Source of the DNA: Macrostomum lignano
Lineage: Eukaryota
Direction of reading: 5' to 3'
Length of the DNA: 64,000 nt
NCBI GenBank assembly: GCA_002269645.1
Contig: NIVC01003057.1
Coordinates: forward strand, 1-64,000
Part shown: positions 30,201-63,657 of the stretch, piece by piece
How the letters are laid out: the number at the start of each line of letters is the position of its first letter
Position numbering within the stretch: the first letter of the stretch is position 1
Notes under the pieces: generated by a model
What the model was told of the DNA's origin: nothing
Databases searched by the model: none
Seen by the model: the letters and a program-made list of their open reading frames with translations, nothing else
Translations under genes and position numbers: made by a program

Positions 30201-31101
30201 AGCTGCGGAAGGCGCAGTCAGCCCAGGAGCTGGAGAGCATGGTGGATGACCGAGTCAAACTGGAGCGGGAGATCTACGTGCTGGGCTGCAAACTGCAGAC
30301 TGTGCTGGCTGAGAATGCCAAACTGACGAGTGGCGTTGACAGGTGCGCTACTGCAGTGGCCTTGAAACGAAACGAAACGAAATTTGAGTCACACTTGGTC
30401 AGGCTAGCAGTTCTGACCATTTCGCTGATCCCTGCACCCAGACTTTCAAGGATCACGTACATAGACACGCACTTATACAAAGTGCACAGCGGCACTGACT
30501 CCCTTCCCCCCTCCGAAGGAATGTACGCACCCTGTACCCTGGTGGGTTGGCCCTCATGAATAGAGCAACAAGCTTGCAGGCTAATTTTCGAGGGTACACG
30601 GGTACTTGAAAGCGAAATTGTTAGGCCTATTTGGTCCAAATCTCACCTTCTGGACCAATTGAAGAAATGATATGCTTTGCATGTAGAGGTGCACTCAGAG
30701 GTGCACTCTGAAGCTTATTTCCTTCTGGGTCCTGCTTGGTTTGTCCATGTTTGGATGTCAAATGCTTTAAATATGATTTTCTAAATTTATTTAACCATTT
30801 CGACAGGCTGGAACGACAGATGCGAACAATGCAGAGCTCCTGGGAACGAGCTGTCCCGGCCAAGGCTCGAACTGAGCAGCATCGAGGCCGGCTGGCTGTC
30901 CAGCTCGAGTCCGGACGCCGGAGAGACTTTCAACTTGCCGAGGAGTTCCAGAACAAGGATCGGCACTTCCTGACTGCTCTCGCTGCCATCATCAATGACA
31001 CGGAAGCGCGGCAGGCTATCGTGGAGGCAGTCGCCGAAAAGCTCGAATCTGAACTGGACTGTTTGGACGAGTTTTTGAAAACTTCGAAGGATGATAATTA
31101 A
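24171..31101 (+). CDS. CCDC175: Coiled-coil protein, CCDC175-like, multi-exon
   Basis: Exons include 24171-24252, 24334-24419, 24501-24612, 24691-24826, 25089-25320, about 25677-25797, about 27594-27670, about 27790-27941, 28021-28091, about 28165-28274, 28343-28387, about 29170-29239, 29591-29727, about 29829-30342 and about 30807-31101. Heptad-rich throughout. The segments DVLETETIKCAAVRHKLMHFPDEINREIHEAVLVARQSN and LKEAHDANFVRLNELLAEKAARQIELNE resemble CCDC175 as I recall it. Some junctions are not fully resolved. Confidence 0.6.
25905..26757 (+). repeat. G/T-rich telomere-like 11-12-bp repeat, CCDC175-like intron
   Basis: Units GGTTTGGTTAG, GGTTTGGTTTAG, GGTTTGGTTGG and GGTTTGGTTAT, with many embedded TTAGGG. 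Confidence 0.95.
27052..27405 (+). repeat. (CT)n / C-run polypyrimidine microsatellite
   Basis: Uninterrupted C/T tract of about 350 bp. Confidence 0.97.
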
Positions 31102-33410: not shown

Positions 33411-36400
33411 ATGACTGATCGACAGTCGAAAACCGCTTTTCAAGAAGGTGAGTGCTCGATTCTCGCCTTTGTTGAAATTGAAGTGACTGGCGCTAATATC
33501 TGAGTGACTATCACTAGTATCGGAGTGACGATCATTAGTATCGGAGTGACTATCACTAATATCGGAGTGACTATCATATTAGTGTCGGAGTGAATATCAC
33601 TAGTATCGGAGTGACTATCATATTAGTGTCGGAGTGACTATCACTAGTATCGGAGTGACTATCGCAAGTATCGGAGTGACAAAAACCTACAAGCAGATTA
33701 TTAGATTATTATTAGAATTTTCAGATTATTAAGAGTTTTAAATTTCCTTTCATTTATCAAAACCCAGACTCCGATGGCATGGCAACCCCAACTGGCAAGG
33801 TGACCGATATTTTTTTGGAAATATATTTTTAACTATTAAATCTCTGTCAACCATGTCAATAATTTCAATTCGAAAATTCAAACCAGTCCACATCGGGCTC
33901 GGGTGCCGACGGCGATTCCCCGACTTCCGGCGACAAAAAACAGCAACAGCAGCCACCGCCGCCGCCACCGAAGATCAGAGAGTTTCGAAGGTCTCAGGTG
34001 AGATTGCTCAGGTAGAATTGTGGTTCTGGATTCGGGGGAATTTAGGGACTGTGAGAAAAGAATTTTGATTTGGGGACTGTGATTCAGTGACTGTGATTCA
34101 TGGACTGTGATTCAGGGACTGTGATTCATGGACTGTGATTCATAGACTGTGATTCAGGGACTGTGATTCATGGACTGTGATTCATCGATTGTGATTCATG
34201 GACTAGGATTTAGGGACTGTGATTCATGGACTGTAATTCATGGATTGTGATTCATGGACTGTGATTCAGGGACTGTGATTCATGGACTGTGATTCATGGA
34301 TTGTGATTCATGGACTAGGATTTAGGGACTGTGATTCTTTGACTGTGATTCATGGACTGTGATTCAGGGACTGTGATTCATGGACTGTGATTCATAGACT
34401 GTGATTCAGGGACTGTGATTCATGGACTGTGATTCATGGATTGTGATTCATGGACTAGGATTTAGAGACTGTGATTCAGTCACTGTGATTCATGGACTGT
34501 GATTCATGGACTGTGATTCATGGACTGTGATTCATGGACTGTGATTCATGGGACTGTGATTCAGGGACTGTGATTCAGGGACTGTGATTCAGGGACTGTG
34601 ATTCAGGGACTGTGATTCAGGGACTGTGATTCATGGACTGTGATTCATGGACTAGGATTTAGGGACTGTGATTCATGGACTGTGATTCAGGGACTGTGAT
34701 TTAGGGACTGTGATTTAGGGACTGGGATTTAGGGACTGTGATTCATGGACTGCGATTCAGGGACTGTGATTCAGGGACTGTGATTCATGGACTGTGATTA
34801 AGAGACTAGGATTTAGGGACTGTGATTCATGGACTGTGATTCATGGACTGCGATTTAGGTACTGTGATTCATGGACTGTGATTCAGGGACTGTGATTCAG
34901 GGACTGTGATTCATGGACTGTGATTCATGGACTGTGATTCATGGATTGTGATTCATGGACTGTGATTTATGGACTGTGATTCATGGACTAGGATTTAGGG
35001 ACTGTGATTCATGGACTGTGATTCAGGGACTGTGATTCAGTGACTGTGATTTAGGGACTGTGATTCAGTGACTGTGATTCAGGGACTGTGATTTAGGGAC
35101 TGTGATTCAGGGACTGTGATTCAGGGACTGTGATTCAGGGACTGTGATTCAGGGACTGTGATTCATGGACTGTGATTCAGTGACTGTGGTTTAGGGACTG
35201 TGATTCAGGGACTGTGATTCAGGGACTGTGATTCAGGGACTGTGATTCAGGGACTGTGATTTAGGGACTGTGATTCAGGGACTGTGGTTTAGGGACTGTG
35301 ATTCAGGGACTGTGATTCAGGGACTGTGATTCAGGGACTGTGATTCAGGGACTGTGATTCAGGGACTGTGATTCAGGGACTGTGATTCAGGGACTGTGAT
35401 TCATGGACTGTGATTCAGGGACTGTGATTCAGGGACTGTGATTCAGGGACTGTGATTCAGTGACTGTGATTTAGGGACTGTGATTCAGGGACTGTGATTC
35501 ATGGACTGTGATTCAGGGACTGTGATTCAGTTGATTCAGGGACTGTGATTCAGGGACTGTGATTCAGGGACTGTGATTCAGGGACTGTGATTCATGGACT
35601 GTGATTTAGGGACTGTGATTCTAGGGACTGTGATTCAGGGACTGTGATTCAGGGACTGTGATTCAGGGACTGGATTCATGGACTCTGACTCAGAGAGTTA
35701 AATCTATGTCCCCTAGAAAAATCATCTCAAGGCATGAGAAGAAATTCGCTTTCTGTTTGCCTATCTTCGAGTTCATGTTTGCATGAATTGGCCAAGTGCA
35801 CACAAAATCGGGAGCATAGCTATATAGTAAATATTATTAGAAATCGTTCCAGATTTGAAGTCTAGCTCTATGCTACCAATATGCTGTATGAACTCCCAAT
35901 TAGGAAAGTTAAAACATTACTTTGCTGACTGAAACATACGCTAAGCAAAAAAACTTTCCTTTTCCCATTTCAGTCGAAAGTTTTCCGCGTGAGTAGTGCG
36001 TTATGCGTCTTTTGCCATATTTTGGAAAAAAAGTGAAAACATTTGTATCAAATTGTAAATTGTAAATCGAGGTTTTGCATTTGCTTAAATTACTTGCCTA
36101 AAATCATTTCAGATGGACGTCAGGCACATGTACATGGCCGAGAGAATGGCAGTGGTGCTGGGACTTGAGTCCAACCAGCTGGAGGAATGGATCATGTTCG
36201 ATGCGAAATTTCCCAAGTTTGACAATTTTTTGCCCCAAATGGAGCAAAAACTATGCTATTCTATTATCAGGCTAAGGTGCTGCATTGCTGTCAAGGTTTT
36301 ATTGGTATTATTAGCACATGTAAAACTGATTAACAATTCAATGTAACTATTTTCCCTATTTTAGCCGGGAATTTCTACCGACACGAAGCAGCTGGTAATA

Positions 36401-39400
36401 AGCGATGTTCGCGACATCGTGAGTAGTTTCTTTTCGTTACAGGGAATTGTTTCAATCCATGATTCAAGAATAAGATTCCATTGGTCCATTGGTTTGCGTT
36501 GGGGCTTTTGGCTTTGGGCCAACTGTGCTTAGGGCCTCGGAGGTTGGCTCTCATGTTGCAGAGTGGATCATCTCTCAGATCCGGTGGGTCCCGAACCCAC
36601 TATGATCTCAAACTCCCAGCAAGCAAACTGCACTTTCCCCATGCTCGGCTTTACAGCCACTGCTTGGCCTGGCATTTGTCTTCACCCGGACAACTCAGCG
36701 AGCCATCACCACCAGCAACTACGCCAACGAGGTGAACTTCACCTACATGGACGCAAGCGACGGTCGCCTTCTTGAAGCTCTGGAAGGCTACTTGGCCTCC
36801 ATTGTGCTGCCAGGACTTGCCAACCTGACTGATTGGGGCGGTCAACTGTCTGCCTCGGCACCTGGTGGCAGCACGAGCGGCAAGGCCAAGATTGACGAAT
36901 ACCTGAACGCGCTGCAGCGTCTACTGGAGTCGCTCGCTGGCGCCAGGGCGAGCATGCAGAACCAGATTCTGCTCAGCGATCCACCAGATGAACTGGCGCA
37001 GAGGGTCCAATCGCCCGTGGATCTGCAGCTGGCTGGTGAGTCCTTGCTGTCGTGTAAAATGCATTCGTCGAGGATCAGTCAGTTAGAACTCTCTAAGGCC
37101 AGCTCAACCCACCGACGGACTGCTAGGAAGACATCGTATACTGTATGTGGCATGTACAGTTTGATGGTAGGAAGAGCTATGATTTTAACTGAATATTACC
37201 TAGTACCTGAGTTATAGTTTGGCACCAAACTCTTACATATATCAGACGCATAAAGCATATAAGGTTTCTCGTAAGTGCGATATTCTAAAAAGGTGACAAA
37301 CAATCTACCTTTTAAAAATTTCCCACTTTTCTGGCCTGCGAAATGGTAAATTAGTTAGCCAGCGAGGAAAAGGGCAAGCTCGTAAGGTGTGCACAGCGAT
37401 AGTCACAGTTAAACTTAGCGAGCCGCCTGACCCGCTAGGGAGCTTAGAGAGCACCGGTCGCGTGCAGGCCTAGCAGTCACACACGATACTTAAGCCTAGC
37501 ATCCTTCTTAGTCTACAAGCCCTTAATGTTGATCCGCAGTGCACAGCTCCGAAGCGCTTGAAAAACTGGAGAGACTGCTGCTGCACTGGGCCAAGGAGAT
37601 CGAACAGGTGCTCAACGAATCCGAGCAGGTCCGACGCGAAACAGACGACGTTGGTCCGACTGCCGAGCTGACCTTCTGGAAGGGTAGAATGGCTCGGTTC
37701 AACAAGTGAGAGAGTCGCTGGGGAGTCACCCCTGGCACAGGCAAATACCATTAGCCAGTTAATTTGCAAGATATCTCATAAAGGTGTCAGTCGACCTACA
37801 GCCGATGATAGTCCAATAAGTCACGTCTTGCAGTTGAAAGTCTTGTAAAGCCTACGGGCGGAGGGATACAATGTCACAGCTTAGCCTCAATAAACTGGTT
37901 TATTAGCCTTAGAATAGATTTTAGTAAGGGATCCTATTATAAAAATATCTTCTTTTGACTGCCCTCCGCAGCCTTATGGAGCAGATGGCCCGGCCAGAGG
38001 TGCGCAAAGTTGTCGCCATGCTGCACAACGCCAAATCGCGCACTCTACGCGTCTGGCACACCCTCGACGCTCGTATCACGGATGCCGCCAACGAGGCCAG
38101 GGACAACGTGAAGTACTTATACACCCTAGATAAGTTCTTCGGTCCATTGACAAAAAGCAACCCGGTGAAAATGCGGGAACACCTGCCGGCGCTAATTAAC
38201 GCCATCCGGATGGTGCACACAGTGTCCCGCTACTACAACACATCGGAGCGGATGACTTCTCTGTTCGTCAAAGTCACCAACCAGATGATTTTCGCATGCA
38301 AAGCGCATGTTCGCTGCGGCTCCGACGGCGGCAGCCTGTGGGACCAGCCGCGCGATCAGCTGATCGAGCGCATGCGCCACTGCCTCGACTTGAACGCCGA
38401 CTATCAGGCCGCGTTTCGGCGCGTTCGCGACCAGCTACACCAGACGCCGCAGGAGCGACAGTTTGACTTCAGCGAGAACTACATATTTGGCAAGTTCGAC
38501 ACCTTCTGCCGTCGTCTAGTGAAGATCACGGACAGTCTTCAGGTAGTGCAGAGCCTTCGCAGTCTGCTCGACATGCGAACAGAGGGCATCGAGCATCTCA
38601 TCGAAGGCTACAAGGGTCTCGGTGAAATTTTCCGCCGTCGAAAATATGACCATTGGATCACCGAGACGCGAGCTTCGACGCCGATTACGATGAGTTCAAG
38701 CAAAGCGTCGGCCAGTTGATTGCCTCTCTTACGCCTATGTGGATGAAATCTTCCGGCGGCCCATGTCGGTGCCACAGCAGCTGGCGGTGCTCGGAAGATT
38801 CGAGCGAATCGAAGGCGTTCAATTTGACTGGAGCGAGAAGCACGCTCGGATACTGCACACCTACGCCAAGGAGCTGGACACGGTGAGGCAGCTCTACCAG
38901 AGGAACAAAGACGACCCTCCGGTAGGTCGTAACCTGCCTCCGATTGCCGGAAAAATCGCCTGGTCGCGTCACCTTCTCGAGAAGGTTGAGAAGCCAATGA
39001 TGGTGTTCAAGCATCAGAAGAAGGCTATCCTGCAGCTGCCGGAAGCTAAAAAGGTTGTGCGCGACTACAATCGAACGGCGGAAGTTCTCCTGGCCTTTGA
39101 AGTTCTGTACCACCAGCAGTGGCTGGCCAGGGTGAAGCAGTTTCACGCCAGCCTGAACTCACCTCTGCTGACCAAGGACCCGGTCACGGGTAGCTTGTCG
39201 GTGAATCTGGACTCTGCTGTGACTGAGCTGCTCCGGGAGGCGGCCTACATGCAACGCTTGGGCCTGTCGGTGCCTGATCAGATTGTGCGGCTCATGTTCT
39301 GCGAGATGGGCATTCGAGAAACCTACAGAGAGTGAGTCTGTTGTTTACGTCCTTTGTAAGCGTATCGCCCACGATCCCTCCTACATGCTCCTACGAGCGT

Positions 39401-42400
39401 ATGCATCTGAATGTTCCTTGTCTGTCTGAGGAAGTTCTTAAAAAATCTAAAAGATAAAATGACCCACTTCTAGATTGGACGAAACTCTGCGAGAATTCGA
39501 CAAAGTTTGCGCCGACATTCCGGCGCCAATCCAGCCGTTGATGAAGCCGTTCAAAGAGCAAATCGGCGACACATTGGAGCCGGGGCTCGGTCAGCTTACC
39601 TGGGTGTCCAGCAAGACCAAGGAGTGTAAGTTTTGAAGGGCGTTGACTTGAGTCGTTTGTCGGTGTGATTTTTTAGATGATTTTTTAAACAGATGAATAA
39701 TTCCTGCAAGTATTGTCTTTGCAATAAAGGTATAGTTATTGGATCATCGTAATCGTTTACTACCTCAGACAATAAATTTACTGCAGACATCGAAAGCGTT
39801 CGCAGCGAGATTGCCAACTTTCGTATCGTCGCCAAACAGCTGTCGGACATGATCCAGTGCCGGGTGGAATCCCCTCTGGAGGAGATGTCGCTGACCGCTC
39901 TCATCGACCTGCCCGACGATGAGCCGGTGACGGCCGACGAGTTCGTGGCGATGACGGAGTCGACCTGCTCAGATGCGGCAGCCTATTTGACAAAGTGAGT
40001 TTCGGCTGAAACTGGAGAATATTTAATTATCTGAAAGTTCAAATCGTCAGAGGAACAATCCTTCACGACTCGATACTTATCGAAAGGAGGAGTCGCTTCA
40101 GAAGAAAAAAAATTCACAAGAACTTGGCCTCTATGGCCGAAAATTCTTGGAAAACATTTCATATGAAGCTTGAAAGAACGCTCCATTTCGATTTTTCTAC
40201 ATTACATTGTAAAACTTCTGATGAGACACCGTCCTTTGGCTGCCAGCCTATTTGACTGCTATGCCTAGGGTAAGGTTTACGTTCGGCAGTCAATTTGCGG
40301 CAGTTTTTTAGACTCATTTCTGTATTTTTTTAGTAAACGATTTACGGTAAATCACAGTACGAGTAATTCTTGAATAAAAGATAAGAAACAAATATCTCTG
40401 AAGTTTCACAATTATAAGTTGTGGAATTTTGACGTGAACACAGATTGTCATGCATGTAGTCGCTTGTAGTAACATTGCAAACAAGCAATTTCATGCTTTC
40501 AGACAAAGCCACCTAGTCGAAGCCGCAGTTGACAATGTGGTTCAGACGATTCTGGAAAGCCTGCCAGAAGGCAAGAAAATTCAGCCGGACCCCAGCCAGG
40601 CCTGGGACTGCTTGGGAGATCAGGCGGTCGCGGCTGCTTCTTCAACGACTGCTGGCGGTAGCAGTGGCTCGGGCAAGCGCCAGCGCTGTCAGGAGTGCCT
40701 GCACTGCCTCGTGTTCTCTTTCCTCAGCTACTACACCAACAGAAACACGGAGGCGCTGGTCCGCTGCACCCGGCTCAGCCTCGACAGTCTGCGGCGTCGC
40801 GCCAACCGATCCGCGCGCTCCGGACATCCGCCTGGAGGCGCCGCCGCCGGTGACGAGACGCGTCGTCGCGTGGCTGCCGTGTCGGCGAACCCATCGAATA
40901 ATGAATTGTCAACAGTGACGGCAACTCCGGGTCCGGTGTCCGGCGTTGGAGCCGGTGGTAGCAGCGGCGTTTCCACCGTCGCGACTACTTCAAGTGGTCC
41001 TCTGTTCAAGGCGGATGTGGTCCTGCAATTGCCGCGAATTGTTGCCCAGCCAACGCTGGACGAGATGCAGCAGCGGGTGAATAAAGCGATTCGCACGGCT
41101 TTAAAGATGGCAGCGGATATACCGCAGTGGCGTCACCTGGCACTGACGCAGCGTCAGCACCAGCGTAAGCTTCAAGAGGAGAGCGCCAAAGCCGAGGGTC
41201 GTGACGTTGACAAGATGACGCCCGAGGAGCTGGAAGAGCTGAAGCTGCCAGCCGGTAGCGCCATCAAGCCGCTGCATCGGATCATTGCCGATCACAAGGA
41301 TGTGGCGAAGGTTGCCTCGCAGTTGGGCTTGCTGATTGGAGGCGGGCGCAGCGCTGAAGAGCGAGGCACCTTCAAGGAGTTTTACCGATTTCAAGGCCTG
41401 TGGATTGAGGTGACTTTCTTCACCGTACGAGACATAGCATTAAAAGATGATAATACATCAGTCTAGTACCCCTTTCAGGAGATTAACGTGAGGGTGAAGG
41501 AGTACATGGACACTCAGCCGACTTTGTCAGACATGGCGGCCGTATTCAAGGATCTATTTGTGAGTGTCTACAGTAATCTAGTTAGATCCTAGGGATTGTC
41601 CTTTCTATCCTTTGCGAAAGTCTTCGTCAGTTACATTTCAGATAAGTCGCTTGCACATACACGATTAAGCTAATCAGTGCAGTAGTAGTATTTTATCTCT
41701 CTGTCTAACCCCATCACTTCACTTATTAACCATTTGGTTTTTCATTAGCTTCTGTACAAAAATAGTAAAACATCTCTGCACGTGAATACATGTAGTCGGC
41801 GCCACACGTCACGGTAGAATCCTTTTAAACAACCCTTTTCTAGGAAACGGAAGCGGAAATCATCAACCTGCCGCAAAGCTACCAGGTGGGGCCAGTTCTC
41901 TACTGCACGGAGCGGCTCAAGACCGCCCTGGCTGAAGAGTGCCGAGCCTGGCGACTGGCCTACGGCAAGGCGCTAAACGACCGGTGCGGTCGAGCTATGG
42001 GCGAAGTTCTGGAGTGGTTTGAAAATCTCAAGAAGCTTCTCGCTCGGCCCGTGCAAGATCTGGACGATGTTCGGGCCCACATGGCCGCCCTGTCTGAAGT
42101 GCGCGAGGGCGAAGTTCGCATCGACCTGACCATTGGGCCGATTGAAGAGACGTACGCTTTGCTCAGCAAGTACGAGATCTTCTTTAACGACGGCAACGCC
42201 GAGCGAGTAGACTCTCTCACGTACGAACGGTCGAATCTCAAAGAGCAGTCGCGCGGTGTCCAAGACCACCTGTTGGACATCCAGCCTAAGTTTCGCGACG
42301 ACCTACTGGCCGGTGTAGGATCTTTTCGTCGGGATCTGGCAGCTTTTGTTGCGGACTACGACTCAAAGTACGTTGCTGCTGGGGATGCTTCATCGATGGC

Positions 42401-45400
42401 CTTAACTTCTGTTAACTTCTGTACTTTCGATTGTAATTTAAAAAACCCTAATATTCATTTGAAATTCCTTTGTCGCTAGTAATACTCGTTAGTAGGCGTT
42501 GTCTCAATGAGTATCGTAGCACACGACCCGGGTTCAATGCTATTTCGGGCCAATAAATTTAAGCATGTCACACCTTGAGTCTCAGCTTAAGAATCTCTGT
42601 AAGTGCGCATGTAGGTAAAAAATGTACCAGTACATGTCTGACGTGACAATACAAAGGTTACCATCGTGCTTGTAAATCTGCTCGAAAAGCATAAATAGGG
42701 GTCAAATTAGACCCAAAATGGATGCGATGTATAAGAGAGGCGCTTTCGTTATCGCGGATCCCTCTATCGGATTGGCAATGATTATGAAATAATTGATATT
42801 CCATCCCTCTACGTCTCACTAGACTCCAGTGGGATAATATGGGATAAATGGGGATCTTTTGTCAACTTAAGGCTCCACAGAGTGCTTCAATACTCGAAAG
42901 ACAGCAAAAGCACCGCTCCACTCTGGTACATCGGTTCAATTCACACTCCGCAAGGGGCCTCGCCTCTGCGTCTATATATATTTATATATTAATGCAACAA
43001 AGCTAAGACTCTCGATTACGCTGTCAATACAATTTAGAGGCCCCAAGGAACCGGAAATCTCGCCGGAGGAGGCTTCCGACCGGTTGGCCCTATTCCAGGG
43101 TCGATTTAACGATCTTTGGCGCAAGTACGAGACGTACACCGGTGGCGAGGAGCTGTTCGGGTTGCCTGAGAGTGACTACCCTGAGCTGCAGCGAATCCGC
43201 AAGGACCTCAGCCTGTTGCAGAAGCTGTACGGCCTGTACAATCAAGTGCTGGACACCCTCAGCAGCTGGAAAGACATCACCTGGTCTGAGGTGAACATTG
43301 AGAACATTCGTCGCCAGTTGGAGGCCTTCCACGATCGCTGCCACCACCTGCCAAAAGCTCTGCGCACCTGGCAGGCTTACGTCGATCTGAGCAAAATCAT
43401 TGACGACTTTGGCGAGGTGATCCCACTGCTGGAGATGATGTCAAGCGGGGCAATGATGTCGCGACACTGGGAACGACTTGAGGCGTTGATGGATCTGCGA
43501 TTCGACGTTGAGTCGGAGAGCTTCCTGCTGCGCAGCCTTATGGAGGCGCCGTTGCTGGAGAAGAAGGACGACATTGAGGAAATCTGCTTATCCGCTGTCA
43601 AGGAGAAAGAAATCGAAGGAAAGCTCAGGTAAGTCGGGGTTTTATGCCAACAAATGCGGAGGAACTTACAAAATTACACTTTGGAAGTCATGATAGCTCG
43701 TAACCGTCAGACAGCGTCTTAATCTGTCTAATTTAACCTTCAAGATCATTCTTGAGAAAAAACTTCGCAAAAAAACTCTCACCTTCGACTTCCACAGGCA
43801 GGTCATCAGCGACTGGTCGGCCATCATTTTCCAGTTCGCTTCGTTTAAAACTCGCGGCGAATTGCTACTGAAAGCAGACTCGGCTGGCGAGCTGATCGCC
43901 GTCACTGAGGACTCGCTGATGGCGCTCGGCTCGCTGCTAAGCAACCGTTACAACGCGCCGTTTCGTTTGAAAATCCAGGAGTGGATGTCAAAACTATCGA
44001 CTACATCCGAGATTATCGACAGCTGGCAGCAGGTGCAGAATCTGTGGATCTACCTGGAGGCTGTCTTCGTCGGAGGCGACATCGCCAAGCAGCTGCCGGG
44101 CGAGGCAAAGCGGTTTAGCAACATCGACAAGAGCTGGCAGCGGGTGATGCAGCGAGCTCACGAGATCACCAACGTCGTGCAGTGCTGCACAGCCGACGAC
44201 ACGCTGTCTCAGCTGCTTCCGCATCTGCTTGAGCAGCTCGAGCTATGCAGGAAGTCGCTCACTGGCTACCTGGAGAAGAAAAGGCTGCTGTTTCCCAGGT
44301 TCTTTTTCGTGTCCGATCCGGCACTGCTGGAGATTCTTGGCCAGGCGTCCGATTCGCACGCGATTCAGGTAAGCCCCGACTCCCTTTGCATAAATTTATC
44401 CCGTTTTAAAAGTAAGACAACGCAAATAAAAATTGTACATTGCATTCAATAAACCAGGCCCACCTGAGCAACATCTTCGGCTGTCTGAAATACGCAACAT
44501 TCGACGACAAAATGTACGACCGCATCGTGTCCGTGAGCTCCCGCGAGGCCGATGCCATGCAGCTGGAGACACCCGTGATGGCGCAGGGGAACGTGGAGGC
44601 CTGGCTGGGCGAGCTGCTGCGCAGCTGCAGGGCCTCCGTGCACGCTAGCATCTGCAGCGCCTTCCGCGGAGTGAAGGTGCGAATGAATCCTCTCTGCTAG
44701 GTTTTGAGCTCTGGAAAATGGGTCGGTGAGGCAGATTCTCAGGCACTGAGGGAGAGAGGAGAGGCAGATTCTCAGGCACTGAGGGAGAGAGGAGAGGCAG
44801 ATTCTCAGGCACTGAGGGAGAGCGGAGAGGCAGATTCTCAGGCACTGAGGGAGAGCGGAGAGGCAGATTCTCAGGCACTGAGGGACAACAGAGAGGCAGA
44901 TTCTCAGGCACTGAGGGACAACAGAGAGGCAGATTCTCAGGCACTGAGGGAGAGAGGAGAGGCAGATTCTCAGGCACTGAGGGAGAGCGGAGAGGCAGAT
45001 TCGCAGGCACTGAGGGACAACAGAGAGGCAGATTCTCAGGCACTGAGGGAGAGCGGAGAGGCAGATTCTCAGGCACTGAGGGAGAGAGGAGAGGCAGATT
45101 CTCAGGCACTGAGGGAGAGCGGAGAGGCAGATTCTCAGGCACTGAGGGAGAGCGGAGAGGCAGATTCTAAAGCACTGAGGGAGAGCGGAGAGGCAGATTC
45201 TCAGGCACTGAGGGAGAGAGGAGAGGCAGATTCTCAGGCACTGAGGGAGAGCGGAGAGGCAGATTCTAAAGCACTGAGGGAGAGCGGAGAGGCAGATTCT
45301 CAAGAACTGAGGGAGAGCGGAGAGGCAGATTCTCAAGAACTGAGGGAGAGCGGAGAGGCAGATTCTCAAGCACTGAGGGAGAGCGGAGAGGCAGATTCTC

Positions 45401-54400: not shown

Positions 54401-57400
54401 CATCATGCGCATCATGGACTGCGTGCTGCTGCTGTTCCGACGGCACATCGACCCGGTGACAATGGACCCGGAGAAGAACTGCATCAAGCCGTCCTGGAGT
54501 GAGGCGTTGAAATTGCTCAGCGGAGATTTTCTAGGGGCGCTGCTTAACTTTCCGAAGGTCTGGAGTGTATAAAGCACATTTTCTTAATTACAATTTTTGG
54601 GTTCTTAATGAGGTGGTGCCTTAGTGACCTCAAGAGGGTGTAGCTAATTATAGATTGGTGTTAATTAGGTTCTTTATTGATACACCCCACCTGTAACGAG
54701 TGGAACCCGGAGATTCGGGTTGGGAAGTTAAGTGACCCTGTCAGGTGTACGAGCTACTTAGTGGAAGTTTTAAATTGTGGCTTGTAGGTTTGAGTAGCCC
54801 CTACCAGGGGTAAACGCATTAGTAGTAGTAGTGGCATATGAGCCGGAGGACTCCAAGAGTACGAGTATCTAGCTGTACAGTGCTCACAAAAACAATCCTA
54901 GGACACAATCAACGGTGAAACTGCCGAGCTGCTGCAGCCCTACTTCGAGATGGAGGACTACACCATGGAGACGGCTCGGAAAGTGAGCGGCAACGTAGCC
55001 GGACTGTGCGCCTGGACCCAGGCCATGGCCACGTTCTACAGCATCAACAAGGATGTCATGCCGTTGAAGGTTGGTGGGACTTTTACCCGTGTATATAAGA
55101 TTTTTACTTGCACTTTTAGAAGGTGAGCCAGCCAAACACAAACGGAATCTACGCATATTCTTTTGGTTATTATTAATTAAGATGCCTTGGATGTCCGTCG
55201 CTTTGTATGAGAATACACACAGATACTATAATTAATAGACTAGATGGACTACTTAGCGTATCTACGTGTAAGCTAACTTCGGTTTTATTACTCGTAGAAA
55301 GTCAAATATCGGATATGTCTGGGGACCGGGAAGGCCAGCGCAGAGTGCGCAGTTGTAGCTGTTCTTTCAGTTGACTAACAGCATCGGCTCGGTGCGGCGG
55401 CGCGTTGTTATCCTGGACAACCCCCAAGTAGCAATGAGCTTCGCGCGTGCCGTAAGTTGCGTCACTCGCAAAGTGAGAAAAATTCATCTCGATTGGAGGG
55501 TGGAACTTTTGACTGTTGCTGAGTATATATGTATTTAGGAGACTCGTTTATTGGCCCTTTTAAGGCTCATTCACACCTACCAAATGAGCCAAAATCACAC
55601 GACCAATGTACAAAGGAATCAAATTTGATCTACAAGTTGTGTTTATCACTCGAAATCTGGCCTTATTTGATGGCGGTGCTTAGCAGAACCCTTCCGGCTT
55701 AGTCTTGCTCTTGCCTGAGCAACCGCCCCGCCTCCCAATTTTTATTGCCTTTCTCGGTGCTTCCTGCCTAAGACTGCCTGCCATGTACATTATACAGGCT
55801 CGTTTATTGACCCTCCTCACCCCCACCAGAACCTCTTCCGACCCGTACAAAATCTCTACCCCCAACCTGCCGTCCAATTTACAGTGCCTTCCAAGCCTAA
55901 AACTGCCAGCCATGTACATTTCCAGTGGCGCTGGCTAATGTACATTATGACTGCACCAATAGCGCGAGTTGTTTACGTGTCTGCAAGTCACGCTTGCTGC
56001 CTTTCTTTTTTCATAAAATAGCTTACACATTCCCTCCTTGCTACTAAACTGAAACTATAGAGTAGCAGAGAGTTTTAACAAGCAAACATGCCTAAGTGGT
56101 CTATCTAGTCCTGTGGTATCTGTGTTGAGAATCCATCAAATTGTGCTAATTCATTTATTAATAAATCATAACACAGGACGGCAGCAGGAGGATTATGAGC
56201 GCCAGCGATCTTAAAGTTCGATATGAAAATTTTCTATTTTATACTTTTACTTTGTTATTCAGTAGTTGATTTTTTATTGAATCTTATAGTCAGCTAGAAA
56301 ACGGCCAAATTCTTCACATACGCTGTGAGTAGCAAGTATCACAAACTAGCTTTTATCGTGTAGAGGACAAAAGACGTATTCAATTTCGAATAAAATACGA
56401 TTTTCAACAAGCAACTCTTTGCTCCCCCACGTAGGAGGAAGTGGACGACGAAGAGGAGGCTCAAAAGAGTCTGAGGGTAACATCAGCTTTCATTTTTTCT
56501 AAGCTTAACTGAGGTACTTGAAGACTGCATGCGAGGCGCCAACTGTTAATCTAAGATGGCTTTCTAAGCTATCGTAGTTTTCCATATTTCAAAGAGCATG
56601 CAAATATTCGGTTCTAAGCATGCGCATGAGCAGTTAAAACCGATGATATCTTACTGACGATATGTATAGAAAATAACTTAATAAAGGTAAAATTTTGCAT
56701 GATAAAACTCAATGAATAGCAATAGAAAAAAAAGATATTTCACTGCAACACCGGAATACGAGATGGCATGCAACTAAAAGAAGTGAATTAAAAAAATATT
56801 GATCTCTATTCAATCAATTTATCAAATTTTCCTCTCTGCTACTTGTTACGGTACTCCGCCAACTCCTTGGTACGATGCGTCATAAAAATGCAACCCAAAT
56901 AAAATTTCTTTGACCAGGCCAATCTGGCCATTCAGGAGGGCCGCCTCAGCCGCACCCGTCGCGAGCTGCGGCACGCCCAGCTGACCATGGCGGAGCGGGA
57001 GGCGGAGCTGGAGGCTGCTCAGGAGCGCTACGACACCGCGGTGGCGCAGAAGCAGACTTTGACAGCGGAAGTTGAGTTCTGCAGGAAGAAGGTGGGACAG
57101 CGAAATTTAAACTTCACCCGGTGGTCGAGGGGCGCCTAAGTAGGAATCGAGGGGCGCCTAAGTAGGAATCGAGAGGCGCCTAAGTAGGAATCGAGGGACG
57201 CCTAAGTAGGAATCGAGGGACGCCTAATTAGGAATCGAGGGGCGCCTAATTAGGAATCGAGGGGCGCCTAATTTTGAATCGAGGGACGGCTAATTAGGAA
57301 TCGAGGGGCGCCTAATTAGGAATCGAGGGACGCCTAATGAGGAATCGAGGGGCGCCTAATTAGGAATCGAGGGACGCCTAATGAGGAATCTAGGGACGCC

Positions 57401-60400
57401 TAAATAGGAAACGAGGGCCGTCTAATTAGGAATCAAGGGATGCCTAATTATGAATCGAGGGACGCCTAAATATGAATCGAAGGACATCTAATTAGGAATC
57501 GAGAAGCGCCTAATTATGAATCGAGAAGCGCCTAATTATGAATCTAGGGACGCCTAATTAGGAATCTAGGGACGTCTAATAAAGAATATAGTAGCGCCTA
57601 ATTAGGAATCGAGGGGCGTCGCTGACAAGCCTGTTTCACTCCATTCAGGTGCACAACGCCACGGCACTAATCGAAGGCCTGTCAGCCGAGCGCATCCGCT
57701 GGACCGAGGCCAGCAAAGGCCTGGAAACGCTGCGCCATCGGTTGCTAGGCGACACTCTCCTAGCAACGGCATTTGTAGCCTACGGCGGACCATTGACAAC
57801 CGAGTTCAGGGAGCTGGCAGTTCGAGCTTGGAAAAAGGAATTAATGCTGGATAAAATTATTTTCACCGATGTGAGTTTCATTTATTAATGAGAGGGGCTG
57901 ATTTTATCTGAGCTATCCGTGTGTGCATAACATGAGACAAGAATTATCAAAGCATCATCAAAGCTAGGGGTGAGAGATTTACCCAAGGAGGGTTAAGGTT
58001 GGAGCAGCTCGTTCGACTCTCGCTTCATAGTAGCCCCTGGTTCGATTCCGTTTGAACACCCACTCACCCTCCCACTCACCCTCTCACTGACCCTCTCACT
58101 GACCCTCCCACTGACCCTCTCACAGACCCTCCCACTGACCCTCCCACTCACCCTCTCACTGACCCTCTCACTGACCCTCTCACAGACCCTCCCACTGACC
58201 CTCCCACTGACCCTCTCACTGACCCTCTCACTGACCCTCTCACTGACCCTCCCACTGACCCTCCCACTCACCCACCCACTCACCCTCTCACTGACCCTCG
58301 CATTGACCCTCCTCTTGACCCTCTCACTGACCCTCCTACTGACCCTCCCACTCACCCCTCCCACTGACTGCTTGATTGGGTCCACAGAGGGCTATGGATC
58401 ACCATGGATGCAATCCGGCTCCATCTTCAGGAGCCGAGCGCTCTGGTCTCCGCTTTGGTCGACCCGACCAGCCAGGACGAGTGGCGCCTCCTTGGCCTGC
58501 CCGGCGACGATTCCTCGGCTCAGAGCGGGCTGGTCGTCAGTCGGCAGGCGGCTGCGGGTCGCTGGCCGCTCCTGGTGGATCCGCACGGTCTCGGGCGCAC
58601 CTGGCTGCGCAGCTGTCTGGAACAGCGGCACCGAGGCCCGGTGACCATCACTGCGCCAAGTCTTCGAGGCTTCCGCGCCGCCCTGGAGGAGGCCGCCACC
58701 GCCGGCAGGCCAATCATTGTCGAGGACGTCGGCGGCGGGCGGCTGCATCCGCTGCTGGCCGGCCTCCTGGCCACCGCAGCCGCCCTCGTCGGTCGCATCC
58801 GAATCGGCGAGAAACTCGTCGACGTGGCCGACGGTTTCCAGCTCTACCTGACTTGCCGACAGGCCGCCCCGGCGCACCCTGCCGATGTCCACGCGCTGAC
58901 GGCTGTCGTGGACTTCGGCGTGACGCCCGGAGGACTTGAGGAGCGGCTGCTGGACACGGTGGCCGAGGCTGAGAAGCCGGAGCAGGAGGCTGAGCGAGCC
59001 AAGCTGCTGGCCGAGGCCGGGCAGCAGCGTCGCCGACTTGAGCAGCTCGAGGAGGGCCTGCTGCGCCGGCTGAGCGACACCGACGGCGCTCTCGTCGATG
59101 ACGCCTCGCTAGTTGAAGTTCTCCGAGAGGCCAAGCAGGCCTCCGAGGAGGCTCGCGAGCGACTGTCGGCGGCCACAGAAGGCGAGGCCCGACTGTGCCG
59201 AGCCCGCGAGGATCTGCGCCCGGTGGCGTCTCGGGGCCGCCTGCTGTACTCCCTGGTGGCGGACCTGGCCCTGCTCAGCCCGATGTACTCGCAGTCGCTC
59301 GACCTGTTCCTGCGGCACTACCGAGCCAGCCTGGCCGAGGCGGCCAAATCGCCGATCGCTCTGCGCCGCATCGCCAACCTGATTGACAGCTTGACTCGAC
59401 GAGTCTATCGAGCCACGTCGCGCGGCCTCTACGCCGCAGACCGGGCCGCCTACAGCCTGCTGCTGGCGCTGCGGCTGCAGACGGCGTCTGGTCACGTGCG
59501 GCCGGACGAACTGGACGTTCTGCTGCGTGCTGGAGCCGATGTTGACGCCAGCGAAGTCGGCGTCAAGCCGCAACGCCGGTGGCTCTCTGACGCCGTTTGG
59601 CTGAACGCACACGCCCTGAGCCGACTGGCGCACTTCAGCCTCATCGTCGATCAGCTCACCAACAATGAACGCGCCTGGCGCGCCTGGTACGAGGAGGAGA
59701 CGCCAGAGCTGGCCGACCCGCCTGACGGATACGCTCGGCTCGGCGCCTTCCACCGCCTGCTGCTGGTCCGCTGCCTGGCCCGGAGCGAACACCCGCGATG
59801 GCTGCCCGCTACGTCAGCGAGACGCTCGGCCCGAGCTTTGCCGACGAGTCCGCCGACACGTCGGGAAGCGGCGGCGGAGGCGGCCTGGAGGCGCTGGCAG
59901 AGGAGGCTGGACAAAGGCGAGCTCCGCTGCTCTGCCTGCTGGCGCCAGGCTGCGGGGACCCCGTGACGGATGGGGTCGAGCGACTGGCGCGTCGGCAGGG
60001 CGTGCCGTGCTCGGTGGTGGCTCTGGGTCGCTGCGAGCAGCAGCAGCAGCAGCAGCAGCATCCGACGCATTCGCAGCAGCATCCGACGCATTCGCAGCAG
60101 CAGCAGCAGCCAAGCAACACTCTGGGCGAGGTCCTCGCCCGTCGGCTGCTGCACTCGGCGATCACCGAAGGTCGCTGGCTGGTGCTGCAGAATCTGCACC
60201 TGTGCAGCGCCGCCTTTCTCGACGAGCTCAGCGACACCCTGGCCGCTTGGTCGGCGGCCGCCGCAGCTGCTAGCGCCGCCTCAGGCAACAGCGGCGGCGG
60301 TGTCGGTGGCAGCGGCGCTGGGACTGGCGGCGCTTCATCCACATCCGCCCCGATGTCGGGCGAGACTTCCGCGGCAGCTGCGGCATCGGCGGCCGCCACG

Positions 60401-63400
60401 GCTGCCGGCGGCGACGTCGTCATAGCAACCGCGGCGGCGGCCTTGGCGTCGGCGGCGGCAGCCGTCAGCAGCGGCACCGGAGGCTCGGCAGGTGGCGGCG
60501 GCGGCGGGGTCGACGGTCAGCTGGAGGGCGGAGTCGTTAGCGGCGGCGGCATCGGCGGCTTCCGCTGCTGGCTGACCTCGGAGCCGCTTCAAGCTTCTGC
60601 GGCCGCCGGCTTTCCCGCCGCTCTGATTGGCGGCTCGCTGAAGTTCACCGCCGACCAGCCGGCCAGCGTCAGGGCCGGGCTGGCGCGCACCTTCGCCCAG
60701 ATCGGCGCCGAGCAACTGGAGTCCAACGGGACGCCGCAGTGGCGCCCGATGCTGTTCTGCGCGGCATTTCTCCACGCCGCCGTCAACGCCCGCCTGCGCT
60801 TCGGCGCCGTCGGCTGGTCAGCGGAGCCTCGACTGTCGCCGACGGATCTCGGCGCCGCGCTGCAGGCCCTGCAGAATCACCTGGATGAGGTCGATGCTCG
60901 CCGTGGCGTCGCTTGGCCAGCGGTCCGACACATGATCGGCGAGGTCGCTTTCGGTGGACGATTCCTCGACGACTGGGACCGCCGCCTGCTGAGCGTGTAC
61001 TGCCGCCTGTGGCTGACGGAGTCCCTGCTGACCGACAGCTTCCAGTTCGCTCGCGGCTACCGGCTGCCGCGGTGTCGCAACGTCGACGAGTTTCGAGCCT
61101 TCGTTGAAGCGCTTCCTGCGATTGACACACCGGAGACCTTCGGACTGCACGCCAATGCGGATGTTGGGTGAGCGGCTGCGTGTGCGCCCACTGACCCTCC
61201 CCTGACCTTCCACTGACCCTCCCCAGACCTTCCACTGACCCTCCCCTGACCTTCCACTGACCCTCCACTGACCTTCCACTGACCCTCCACTGACCTTCCA
61301 CTGACCCTTCCCCAGACCTTCCACTGACCCTCCCCTGACCTTCCACTGACCCTCCACTGACCTTCCACTGACCCTTCCCCAGACCTTGCACTGACCCTCC
61401 CCAGACCTTGCACTGAACCTCCCCTGACCTTCCACTGACCCTCCCCTGACCTTCCACTGACCCTCCCCTGACCTTTCACTGACCCTTCCCTGACCTTTCA
61501 CTGACCCTTCCCCAGACCTTCTACTGACCCTCTCCTGATCTTCCTCTGACCCTTTCCCTGAATTTCCACTGACCCTCCCCTGACTTCCCACTGAACCATT
61601 CACTGAGCCACCTACCCATCTAGATGCAGAATCTGCCCTTGTACATCCTTGATGATGCGTTAGTCATGCCCTCTGTACACCCTATGTGAGCGTGTGCTTG
61701 CGTACGTAACTGTGTTTCGCTAGCCCCATGCAAGCTCACTAGAAACTTCCACAAACCCTTCCATCCTTCCAGCTGCCAGAGGGTCAGAGCGAATGCCATA
61801 TTAGAGTCGGTTTGCCTGATGCAGCACTATCCGCCAAGCCAGCGACTGTCGGGGCTGGCTGACAGGCGCTCCATCGCGGATATCAGCGAGGATGCGCTGG
61901 GAAAACTGCCGGACGAGTTCGGACCCACAGAGGTAATCCGACACACTTTAACACTGCCGCAAATCCAGGCCACAGAGGCCTTCCATTCCATCAAAGTATC
62001 ACCGATCCCATCAAAGTATCACCGATCCCATCAAAGTATCATCGATCCCATCAAAGTGTCATCGATCCCATCAAAGTATCACCGATCCCATCAAAGTATC
62101 ACCGATCCCATCAAAGTATCACCGATCCCAACAAAGTATCACCGATCCCAACAAAGTATCACCAATCCCAACAAAGTATCACCGATCCCATCAAAGTATC
62201 ACCGATCCCATCAAAGTATCACCGATCCCAACAAAGTATCACCGATCCCATCAAAGTATCACCGATCCCATCAAAGTATCACTGATCCCAACAAAGTATC
62301 ACCGATCCCATCAAAGTATCACCGATCCCATCAAGCACCGACTATCCCAGCTGACGTCACTCCTCCAACATCCACATCCGCATTCCACATCCCAGATTCG
62401 CGACCGTCTCCGCAAGCTGGATCATCAGCAGCGCCCGCTGAACGTCTTCCTGCGCACCGAGCTCAACCGAATGCACCGTCTGCTAACCGCAGCCCGCGCC
62501 GATCTGGCCGCCTTGGCCGCCTCATCCGAGGACGTCATCGAAGCAGCCAAATTGGTGGACCTGCCGGACACTCTTCTGGACGTGCTGGAGGCCCTTCGCG
62601 AGCTCCGGGTGCCGACTCGATGGCTGCGACTCGCCTGGGAGGAGGAGTCGCCGTCGGAATCCGTTGAGTCGCCAGGTGGCCTCGCTGTCTGGCTGACGGA
62701 CCTTCGCGAGCGTCACGCTCAGCTTCGCTCATGGCTGGTTGAGGGCCGGCCGCCTGCGGCGCACTGGCTGGCGGGCTACTTCAGGCCTGCGGCGTTTCTT
62801 GTCGCCCTTCGACAGGAGGCCGTCAGGGCGAGGCGCGGATGGTCGCTGGAGACGGTGCATCTCGTCAGCGATGTCACCCGGCTGTCTAAGTGAGTGCAGG
62901 AATTCTAAGACGGGTAATTCTAAGACGGGGAGTTCTAAGACGGGGAATTCTAAGACGGGGAATTCTAAGACGGGGAATTCTACGACGGGGAGTTCTAAGA
63001 CAAGGAATTATAAGACGGGAGTTCTAAGACGGGGAATTCTAAGACGGGGAATTCTAAGACGGGGAATTCTAAGACGGGGAATTCTAAGACGGGGAGTTCT
63101 AAGATGGGGAAGTCTAAGACGGGTAATTCGAAGACGGGGAATTCTAAGACGGGGAATTCTAAGATGGGGAATTCTAAGACGGGGAATTCTAAGACAGGGA
63201 TTCTAAGACGGGGAATTCTAAGATGGGGAATTCTAAGACGGGGAATTCTAAGACGGGGATTCTAAGACGGGTAATTCTAAGACGAACCCCTGTCCCCGAC
63301 AGAGAGGAGGCCCACGCTGCACCACCAGACGGCGCCTTCGTCCACGGTCTTGTCCTGGACGGCGCAGGCTGGGATCGCAGGAACAGCCGACTCACGGAGG

Positions 63401-63657
63401 CCGCCCCCAAGGCCGGGCCGGTGCAGCTGCCCCTGGTGCACCTGTTCGCCGTGTGCAGCAGCGGCGGCGGTGGAGCGGGCGGAGCTGGCGGAGGTTCGGG
63501 CGCGGGTTCAACGGGACTGTACGAGTGCCCGGTGTACACCCGCTCTGAGCGGGGTCAGAAGCGTCAGCTGTGCTGCCTGCAGCTGCGCAGTCAGCGCGAT
63601 CCGGAGCACTGGACGCTCAGAGGGGTTGCGGCTGTGCTCGGCGACGCTGCGAAATGA
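33411..63657 (+). CDS. DNAH5: Axonemal outer-arm dynein heavy chain, DNAH5/DNAH8 (gamma) class, full length, about 33 exons, with divergent motor ring
   Basis: Domains in order: tail (EANDNVKYL-type [23 protein letters not shown]); linker ([49 protein letters not shown]); AAA1 GPTGAGKT (46770-46793) and GCLDEFNR; AAA2 GESGSGKT and [20 protein letters not shown]; AAA3 GPGVGKT and [18 protein letters not shown]; AAA4; stalk/MTBD ([17 protein letters not shown]); AAA5; AAA6; C-terminus HWTLRGVA. Four 1-bp homopolymer deletions at about 36228, 38653, 38729 and 59780. I cannot separate DNAH5 from DNAH8 orthology by eye. Confidence 0.93.
33495..33680. repeat. 21-bp minisatellite, dynein intron
   Basis: Unit CACTAGTATCGGAGTGACTAT. 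Confidence 0.9.
34068..35690. repeat. 14-bp minisatellite, dynein intron
   Basis: Units GGGACTGTGATTCA and TGGACTGTGATTCA, more than 110 copies. Confidence 0.97.
44727..46090. repeat. 33-bp minisatellite filling a dynein intron
   Basis: Unit GAGGCAGATTCTCAGGCACTGAGGGAGAGCGGA, about 41 copies. Confidence 0.97.
47185..47942. repeat. 24-bp minisatellite, dynein AAA1 intron
   Basis: Unit TGAGCAACATGATTTGTYGTTTAT. Degenerate copies at about 46985-47185 and 48610-48800. Confidence 0.97.
49255..49550 (-). mobile_element. tRNA-derived CORE-type SINE in a dynein intron
   Basis: The minus strand begins GGCGGCTGCAGCTTAGTGGTTAGAGCGTTGGACTC (tRNA head, A box). It continues TGTGTCCTTGAGCAGGACACCTAACTCTGCATTGCTTCAGTTCAACCAGCTGTAAAATGGGTGCC, which resembles the CORE domain of MIR-like SINEs. 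The B box appears deleted and no target-site duplication (TSD) is seen. Confidence 0.7.
50992..51182. repeat. 30-bp minisatellite, dynein AAA2 intron
   Basis: Unit GATGCCCTCCGATCCCTCCATTCCATGCGT, about 6 copies. Confidence 0.9.
55300..55440 (-). mobile_element. Tc1/mariner transposase remnant
   Basis: Translation [15 protein letters not shown]...[13 protein letters not shown] matches the Tc1 DDE-domain motifs QDNAxxH and WPxxSPDLNPIE. Short and truncated; intronic. Confidence 0.7.
57128..57620. repeat. 22-bp minisatellite, dynein intron
   Basis: Unit GGAATCGAGGGGCGCCTAATTA, about 22 copies. Confidence 0.95.
58060..58368. repeat. 12-bp pyrimidine-rich repeat, dynein intron
   Basis: Units CTGACCCTCTCA and CTGACCCTCCCA. 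Confidence 0.95.
61188..61605. repeat. About 22-bp pyrimidine-rich repeat, dynein intron
   Basis: Unit CACTGACCCTCCCCTGACCTTC with variants. Confidence 0.9.
61985..62335. repeat. 20-bp minisatellite, dynein intron
   Basis: Unit ATCACCGATCCCAWCAAAGT. Confidence 0.95.
62899..63283. repeat. 15-bp minisatellite filling the last dynein intron
   Basis: Unit GGGGAATTCTAAGAC, about 25 copies. Confidence 0.95.

Follow-up and report, generated by a model that had tools for sequence, protein, structure and literature searches.

The stretch of DNA considered here (the window) comprises 64,000 nucleotides, positions 1 to 64,000 of the forward strand of Macrostomum lignano contig NIVC01003057.1 (assembly GCA_002269645.1), and positions 36113-63657 of its plus strand hold one dynein heavy-chain gene of the DNAH5/8 class (DHC3, outer-arm gamma type). 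Spliced protein-to-genome alignment yielded a model of about 40 exons and, after frame correction, about 4530 codons (Table 1). The aligner, written for this work, accommodates frameshifts, gaps and GT/GC-AG introns of any phase; it was guided by DNAH8 of the toad Bufo gargarizans (XP_044147017.1), the nearest full-length protein found, and then by a Percolomonas heavy chain. Few large proteins are as well conserved as dynein heavy chains. In the protein predicted here the motor ring, especially AAA1, AAA4, AAA5 and AAA6, has evolved far faster than the tail, early linker, AAA3, stalk and microtubule-binding domain (MTBD), an inversion of the usual dynein pattern.

The dynein Pfam domains occur in order, namely DHC_N1, DHC_N2, AAA1 (AAA_6), AAA2 (AAA_5 and its lid), AAA3 (AAA_7), AAA4 (AAA_8), MT, AAA5 (AAA_9), AAA6 (Dynein_heavy, AAA_lid_11) and Dynein_C, each above its gathering score although AAA2 is truncated, and there is a weak match to DYH2-5-8_CC. 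Human DNAH5 (PDB 8j07 chain n0) and Bufo DNAH8 share this domain order from DHC_N1 to Dynein_C, and the protein is collinear with DNAH5/8 over approximately 4500 residues, the tail matching residues 33-86 and 125-644 of human DNAH5 (E=4e-128). Match scores of the tail and AAA5 against solved structures place the gene in the DHC3/DNAH5-DNAH8/outer-arm gamma class. For the tail these were 444 bits to human DNAH5, 424 to 9fqr_I3 and 302 to Chlamydomonas outer-arm gamma, with beta and inner-arm chains at no more than 142; for AAA5 the same three structures gave 337, 325 and 283, and all others no more than 237. The 4730-residue chain 9fqr_I3 is named CFAP57 in its deposition and resembles a DNAH8-type chain. 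Chlamydomonas gamma (PDB 7kzm chain C) is thus the third-best structural relative by tail and AAA5, its tail aligning from residue 1, but unlike the window gene it has every element of the AAA1 site and works as a motor. A first-pass annotation of this DNA had set the gene at 33411-63657. The C-terminus is indeed normal, with the stop codon at 63657, whereas the proposed start falls in tandem repeats: no dynein homology was found upstream of 36113, and 33.4-36.1 kb consists mostly of such repeats. Introns are few for the gene family (about 10, vs 19 in the canonical relative L001 over the same 1325 residues) and those that encode the ring are very long (exons of 586 and about 910 codons), which suggests extensive intron loss in the lineage or in the window copy.

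Table 1. Positions of features of the dynein heavy-chain gene in the window
Feature	Position	Strand	Basis or remark
Tail (DHC_N1), neck and first two thirds of linker (DHC_N2)	36113..44368	+	Pfam; well-kept part
Frame break 1 (probable), T6 for an expected T7 (..FDNF/)	36226..36236 (~36232)	+	DNAH5 33-86 homology crosses it, weak (10 bits)
Frame break 2, one base missing in gaccattgg (..RRRKYD/)	38645..38655 (~38651)	+	tblastn segment pairs, ungapped DNAH5 alignment
Frame break 3, one base missing in ctcttacgcc (..GQLIASL/YAYVDEIF..)	38728..38738 (~38733)	+	Ungapped DNAH5 alignment
Intron with 33-bp x 41.5 minisatellite (44724-46091)	44677..46118	+	Open in one frame by chance, not dynein
AAA1 Walker A, GPTGAGKT, GxxGxGKT intact	46770..46799	+	Motif reading
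AAA1 Walker B, LDEFNR, Asp-Glu intact	49013..49039	+	Motif reading
AAA1 sensor-I codon AGC (Ser; Asn in dyneins)	49654..49656	+	ITT/SPGYPGR vs ITM/NPGYAGR
AAA1 sensor-II Arg kept, QYDFGMR	49858-49878	+	Spacing matches yeast K1802 to R1971
AAA2 Walker A, GESGSGKT, intact	50559..50582	+	Motif reading
Gap for ~83 AAA2 codons (DRIPM..FEV..NASPATVSR.GMV.. to first lid helices)	50898..51272	+	Spliced alignment
586-codon exon: AAA2 lid, AAA3, start of AAA4	51266..53023	+	Spliced alignment
AAA3 P-loop GGPGVGKT, intact	51782-51805	+	Motif reading
AAA3 Walker B, FIDDIGMP	51977-52003	+	Motif reading
AAA4 P-loop GPPGCGRRS, Lys to Arg	52925-52951	+	Motif reading
Stalk exons CC1, MTBD (54351-55069), CC2/strut	53976..57870	+	Spliced alignment
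AAA5 and AAA6 block, first-pass '2.7-kb exon', GC 0.70	58434..61165	+	Spliced alignment
Frame break 4, one base missing in ctggcccgg	59773..59783 (~59778)	+	Collinear with Bufo DNAH8, no room for intron
C-terminal domain exons and stop	61773..63657	+	Introns with 20-bp and 15-bp minisatellites

The uneven conservation is seen in two measures. Pfam scores of the window protein relative to Bufo DNAH8 were 533/461 bits for DHC_N1, 408/403 for DHC_N2, 351/424 for AAA_6, 182/224 for AAA_7, 210/283 for AAA_8, 116/147 for MT, 165/252 for AAA_9, 49/125 for Dynein_heavy (the D6 P-loop), 117/170 for AAA_lid_11 and 192/333 for Dynein_C, i.e., ratios of 1.0-1.16 in the tail and linker and 0.39-0.83 in the ring. 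The toad chain is itself atypical in AAA1, and 20 diverse dynein heavy chains together with a canonical relative were therefore chosen as yardsticks. At columns at least 90% conserved in the alignment of those 20 chains, the window protein retains the conserved residue at 95% in the tail, 97% in the linker, 95% in AAA3, 94% in the C-terminus and 94% in the aligned part of AAA2, but at only 77% in AAA1, 80% in AAA4, 79% in AAA5 and 71% in AAA6 (reference median 96-100%). Pooled, 126/134 such columns (94%) are kept in the tail, linker, AAA3, stalk/MTBD and C-terminus vs 175/228 (77%) in AAA1, AAA4, AAA5 and AAA6 (Fisher p=1e-5). Retention in AAA5 and AAA6 lies below that of every reference tested and in AAA4 it ties with the lowest, while AAA1 is undercut by one reference (0.31). 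Stalk segments are within one residue of their length in Bufo DNAH8. The mosaic described in the first-pass annotation is therefore borne out, and divergence checked domain by domain proved strongly non-uniform, not the lineage-typical uniformity that had been named beforehand as the contrary outcome. The accompanying description of the conserved parts as reading almost like DNAH5/8 was overstated. Identity reaches no more than 81% to a canonical invertebrate relative, and 64% to Bufo DNAH8, even in the best exon (43627-44368); for AAA3 it is 46% with the toad chain and 53-63% with the closest fragments in the database, and for the MTBD 66% with Bufo DNAH8.

The unusual features of the toad protein deserve mention. 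Its AAA1 site is non-canonical (GPAAAGKTET, FDEFSR, TMSPKHADFQ), with Ser at sensor-I as in the window, and its tail carries a MADF-domain insert; either the sequence was mis-predicted or the toad has a further DNAH8-type chain in which the AAA1 site is altered.

The canonical invertebrate DNAH5-type relative, here L001, lies on a metagenome/assembly contig (ERZ26052378) and was retrieved via the linker exon, as were two further loci, L002 and L003. By the linker exon the three are the closest relatives, at 80-88% identity. All three have canonical AAA1/AAA2 motifs (GPAGTGKTET, FDEFNRI, TMNPGYAGR, GDRIPM..NASPATVSRNGMV) and no frame breaks. Within 36113-44368 the window protein is 56-81% identical to L001, and from the late linker onward 41-62%. 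With percent identity to L001 given for window vs toad, the neck stands at 56 vs 36 and successive linker parts at 58, 81 and 42 vs 55, 68 and 52, whereas AAA1 parts fall to 61, 62 and 48 vs 70, 71 and 71, and the AAA2 core to 60 vs 80. A Tajima test with Bufo DNAH8 as outgroup counted 56 window-unique vs 33 L001-unique changes in the neck and early linker (p=0.015) and 159 vs 45 from the late linker to AAA2 (p=1.4e-15), with heterogeneity between the regions at p=0.01. Acceleration hence sets in near 44.4 kb, where the first-pass annotation had placed its onset. The stretch 44724-46091, however, is not degenerate coding sequence but an intronic minisatellite, cut off from the flanking exons by a stop codon and a frame change; dynein homology returns at 46119.

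The direction of change is also distinctive. Gly, Ala, Arg and Pro (GARP) together make up 0.30-0.42 of ring residues and 0.20-0.28 of those in the tail and linker, in agreement with the drift of the ring toward Ala, Arg and Gly noticed by eye. Counted over the sites at which L001 and Bufo have the same residue, G/A/R/P residues show 49 gains and 21 losses in the window, and F/Y/M/I/N/K residues 16 gains and 63 losses. GC content at third codon positions (GC3) is 0.65-0.88 in all exons, conserved or diverged, and does not correlate with per-exon identity; the notion that the diverged exons are simply the GC-rich ones was rejected on these grounds, as it is the replacement sites that carry the GC shift. 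First and second codon positions have GC contents of 0.61 and 0.39, respectively, in the first part of the gene; toward its end the lowest of the three positional values is 0.51 and the next approximately 0.76. A GC-ward shift of this kind would be expected of relaxed purifying selection where the local substitution equilibrium is GC-rich, which would explain the impression of Ala, Arg and Gly enrichment without a new function.

The acceleration is specific to this gene, since the neighboring UBE3A gene (minus strand, ~13414-21010) is normally conserved and the lineage is accordingly not hyper-divergent. Its HECT domain, in three exons, gives a collinear alignment of 221 residues to human E6AP (E=5e-83); the identity, estimated by eye at about 60%, is ordinary for an invertebrate. 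The nearest loci by linker exon are L001, L002 and L003, and in the protein collections nothing was found nearer to the divergent ring than canonical dyneins, although for AAA5 this negative is weak, that search having reached its candidate cap. The best match to AAA3 among 5.8 billion proteins was 63% identical. An exhaustive search of representatives reached 45% identity at best, with Bufo DNAH8 the closest full-length protein, and a word-indexed search with the linker exon matched only short exon fragments and no full-length references. Exact look-ups of the products of three window ORFs matched neither an entry in the assemblies index nor a transcript. Divergence spread uniformly over a fast-evolving, GC-rich lineage would agree with the high GC3 of all exons and with the mild window-specific excess in the tail, but given the strongly non-uniform domains, the ordinary UBE3A HECT domain, the canonical motifs of the three nearest loci and the lack of any database protein nearer to the ring, this explanation is very improbable indeed.

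Hydrolysis at AAA1 requires the sensor-I Asn and the AAA2L arginine finger, and no known dynein isoform is reported to lack any of the catalytic residues of AAA1 (PMC4879348). Three of the five elements of a complete AAA1 site are present in the window (Walker A, Walker B and sensor-II) and two are missing (sensor-I and the arginine finger), the absence of the AAA2L finger holding only if the AAA2 deletion described below is real. The earlier statement that catalytic residues are altered is therefore correct, as far as AAA1 is concerned, only with respect to the Ser at sensor-I and the finger lost by deletion, and not for Walker A and B, which are intact. The sensor-I codon adjoins an intron whose position is shared with L001 (between ..TM and NPGY..). 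As encoded, a normal power stroke would not be expected, because the AAA1 site is without the sensor-I Asn and the AAA2 arginine-finger segment.

The exon preceding the AAA2 gap ends LTLAN(G)/GTGAGTGA (50898-50906) and homology returns at VPECNYIHQ (51266). The 365 nt between the AAA2 flanks are non-coding and contain only a 30-bp repeat (51010-51217); the left edge of the gap is separated from this repeat by 110 nt of unique sequence. Searches in six frames with tblastn and a profile hidden Markov model found no remnant of the segment in the whole window, matches being at chance level only. A decayed remnant in place was accordingly rejected, the nucleotide alignment of the gap to L001 also being unconvincing, as were the fill-in 'exons' that the aligner proposed at 50903-51120, which showed 23-33% identity and needed two extra frame shifts. 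In L001 and L003 LTLANGDRIPM lies within one exon. The donor at the gap is in phase 1 and the first acceptor in phase 0, such that an in-frame message would arise only via a second AG (51271-51272), 7 nt downstream of the first acceptor, by splicing from 50898 to 51273. The lost segment holds R2366 and R2392 (Bufo DNAH8 numbering), invariant in 20/20 dyneins, and R2392 stands where the spacing in yeast (K1802 to R2209) would put the AAA2 arginine finger. The mismatched splice phases and the distance of the left edge from the repeat favor a real lesion. We put the chance that this deletion is real at a little over one half.

Contrary to the first-pass view that the frame stays open to the C-terminus, the assembled gene has four single-base breaks (Table 1), three firm and one probable, each amounting to one missing base in a short homopolymer. 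Around the second and third of these (~38651/38733), adjacent tblastn high-scoring segment pairs follow one another without a break in the query while passing through frames 2, 1 and 3. Likewise the '2.7-kb exon', which had been offered as an argument against a dead gene, is really two overlapping open reading frames (ORFs) in different frames, 58404-59966 and 59798-61171. Frame shifts that the aligner placed in the poorly conserved tail at 40.2-41.2 kb under the Percolomonas guide were rejected as artefacts. Approximately 9.7 kb of highly homogeneous minisatellites contain 0 indels where about 2.8 would be expected at a rate of 4 errors per 13.7 kb (P ~0.06), and a high rate of random-deletion assembly error is weakly disfavored for that reason. 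The probability that the frame breaks are real is judged to be a little under one half.

Outside these breaks the reading frame has been kept. There are 0 in-frame stops in 4477 aligned codons, and the four largest ring exons contain 0 where composition-matched shuffles predict 16.0, 5.9, 8.5 and 8.5. Relative to the toad protein the motor has about 38 in-frame indels and one frame-breaking indel, and the three-base periodicity of GC is retained. The assembled sequence therefore shows the frame-disrupting indels of a pseudogene and neither the stops nor the loss of coding signature. Most of the divergence thus accumulated while selection still maintained an open frame and the overall architecture. 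That the gene is a long-dead pseudogene was excluded by the absence of stops, the in-frame indels and the preserved stalk length.

The explanation we tentatively prefer, while giving it somewhat less than an even chance, is that the gene is a relaxed, GC-drifting, lineage-specific paralogue and a recently inactivated, unprocessed pseudogene that followed a long relaxed phase. According to this explanation the copy would have been kept for a long time as an open reading frame, with constraint persisting on the tail, early linker, AAA3 and the geometry of the stalk/MTBD; selection would have relaxed on the late linker, AAA1, AAA4, AAA5, AAA6 and the C-domain, and replacements would have drifted to GC-rich codons (Ala, Arg, Gly and Pro). 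In a last stage, four single-base deletions and loss of the AAA2 arginine-finger segment may have disrupted the gene. From comparison of sequences we infer that relaxed selection was the cause and that motor activity was lost. The DHC3 class is reported to have duplicated twice early in animals, and outer-arm chains to have often been duplicated in single lineages (PMC5100056), which makes an extra, relaxed copy plausible. As assembled, the gene would encode no working motor because the AAA2 arginine-finger segment is gone, sensor-I is Ser and the frame is broken four times. Several observations weigh against inactivation. All four breaks are of one kind, a missing homopolymer base, and resemble long-read consensus errors as much as mutation; the AAA2 gap adjoins a tandem repeat; one repeat unit occurs in two introns (58059-58368 and 61188-61594), making assembly collapse possible; and a perfect G/GTGAGT donor together with the in-frame AG could permit a translated product. 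A gene with four fixed indels should moreover have acquired about 1-3 nonsense codons among the 4477, and none is present. The strong past coding constraint also indicates a gene functional until recently at least.

The same observations can be taken further in two directions. The frame breaks and the AAA2 loss might both be assembly artefacts, and the locus an intact, translated, fast-evolving heavy chain with a complete ring that binds ATP at AAA1 and perhaps hydrolyses it with changed kinetics, e.g., a sperm or sensory outer-arm isoform. The intact AAA1 Walker motifs and sensor-II Arg, the AAA2 and AAA3 P-loops, the lack of stops against 6-16 expected per large exon, the excess of in-frame over frame-breaking motor indels, the preserved stalk length and the uniform character of the breaks, with the deletion abutting a tandem repeat, all fit such a chain. 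It is nevertheless rather unlikely, given that 20-30% of the residues at the highly conserved columns of AAA1, AAA4, AAA5 and AAA6 are replaced, that the change from Asn to Ser at sensor-I is independent of the assembly lesions and lies at a conserved intron position, and that the homogeneous repeats are free of indels and the left edge of the gap stands clear of the repeat. Alternatively, only the frame breaks may be sequence errors and the AAA2 deletion real, with the message spliced via the second AG, giving the translated pseudo-motor that the first-pass annotation had proposed. The conserved tail would then assemble the chain into the outer arm, AAA1 hydrolysis would be incomplete for want of the arginine finger and the sensor-I Asn, and the stalk/MTBD, held in one affinity state, might act as a brake, a cross-link or a passive partner, a step that goes beyond an inability to hydrolyse ATP. 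The pattern of constraint suits this proposal, with the tail, N-terminal part of the linker, AAA3 and MTBD kept and the catalytic ring relaxed, as do the incomplete AAA1 site, the frame maintained across the ring during divergence and the availability of the in-frame splice. Yet loss of the ~83 core AAA2 residues, including a beta strand, the ATVSR.GM element and the first lid helices, would damage the ring fold, not just silence it, and could keep the ring from folding at all; the first and better-placed acceptor AG gives a frameshift, and four frame breaks have to be explained away, making the proposal improbable, more so than an intact chain. To our knowledge no dynein pseudo-motor has been described, and a search of the literature found no described dynein heavy chain with a kept tail and MTBD on a degenerate ring.

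Comparison with characterized systems helps to define what would be new here. Relative to DNAH5 and Bufo DNAH8, the ring of the window protein is far more diverged than its tail, a reversal of the norm, and ~83 AAA2 residues are absent; AAA1 has Ser at sensor-I and the AAA4 P-loop reads GCGRRS, not GSGKQS; poly-Q/His and Ala/Gly/Ser inserts occur in AAA2, AAA3 and AAA6; and there are the four frame breaks. Motor-fold proteins without ATPase activity exist in the kinesin superfamily, such as KIF26A/B and Vik1/Cik1, whose function has been shown experimentally. They offer an analogy for binding or assembly without ATP turnover, but belong to a different superfamily, and the window gene is disrupted as assembled. 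The Drosophila Y-linked kl-3 is a DNAH5/8-class testis dynein with repeat-filled introns and a functional motor (cf. PMC12965833). The likeness lies in a dynein heavy chain with tandem-repeat introns that is a lineage-specific, specialised copy, whereas repeat-filled introns are found here in all genes of the window, not in the dynein alone.

The window gene would be novel only if it proves to be expressed; otherwise it is an ordinary decaying paralogue. Should the tail and MTBD prove to have been selected while the ring was let go, the outer-arm scaffold would be usable without its motor, and nature would have tested in this gene which residues of the ring folding and assembly can do without. 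A dying paralogue, on the other hand, would provide a clean example of relaxed selection and GC-biased substitution reshaping a protein toward Ala, Arg and Gly. The gene also shows how easily annotation by eye can be misled in GC-rich DNA, where a frame may be open for most of its length and repeat introns may be open by chance.

Low-complexity sequence is present in the coding part of the ring, including QQQQHQQQ in AAA2 (50778-50801), Q8HHQQHLEQQ before AAA3 (51347-51397), a 21-bp tandem duplication (QQHPTHS) at 60052-60102 and an Ala/Gly/Ser-rich insert of about 100 residues in AAA6 (~60242-60540). Four short in-frame 'introns' called by the aligner (59860-59916, 60046-60114, 60250-60540 and 63458-63493) are more likely coding inserts formed by low-complexity runs.

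Nearly every intron and spacer of the window contains a minisatellite, with units of 11-75 bp in up to 116 copies, and all of its genes are alike in this respect (e.g., 3103-4262, 7056-8484, 15201-16512, 34073-35693 and 47187-47941). The 28-bp x 51 array at 7056-8484 shows 100% identity between copies, and several of the arrays are open by accident. Two different introns of the dynein gene carry arrays of one unit, CCACTGACCCT (58059-58368 and 61188-61594), between which unequal crossing-over, or a collapse during assembly, could remove exons. Between UBE3A and a coiled-coil gene lies an 853-bp array of AGGGTTTGGTT (25906-26758), an 11-bp unit with many 12-bp variants. The coiled-coil gene is on the plus strand (29822-31101) with ORFs of 245 and 121 codons, the N-terminal ORF of UBE3A has 345 codons (19973-21010), and the minus strand carries an ankyrin-repeat ORF at 2028-2738.

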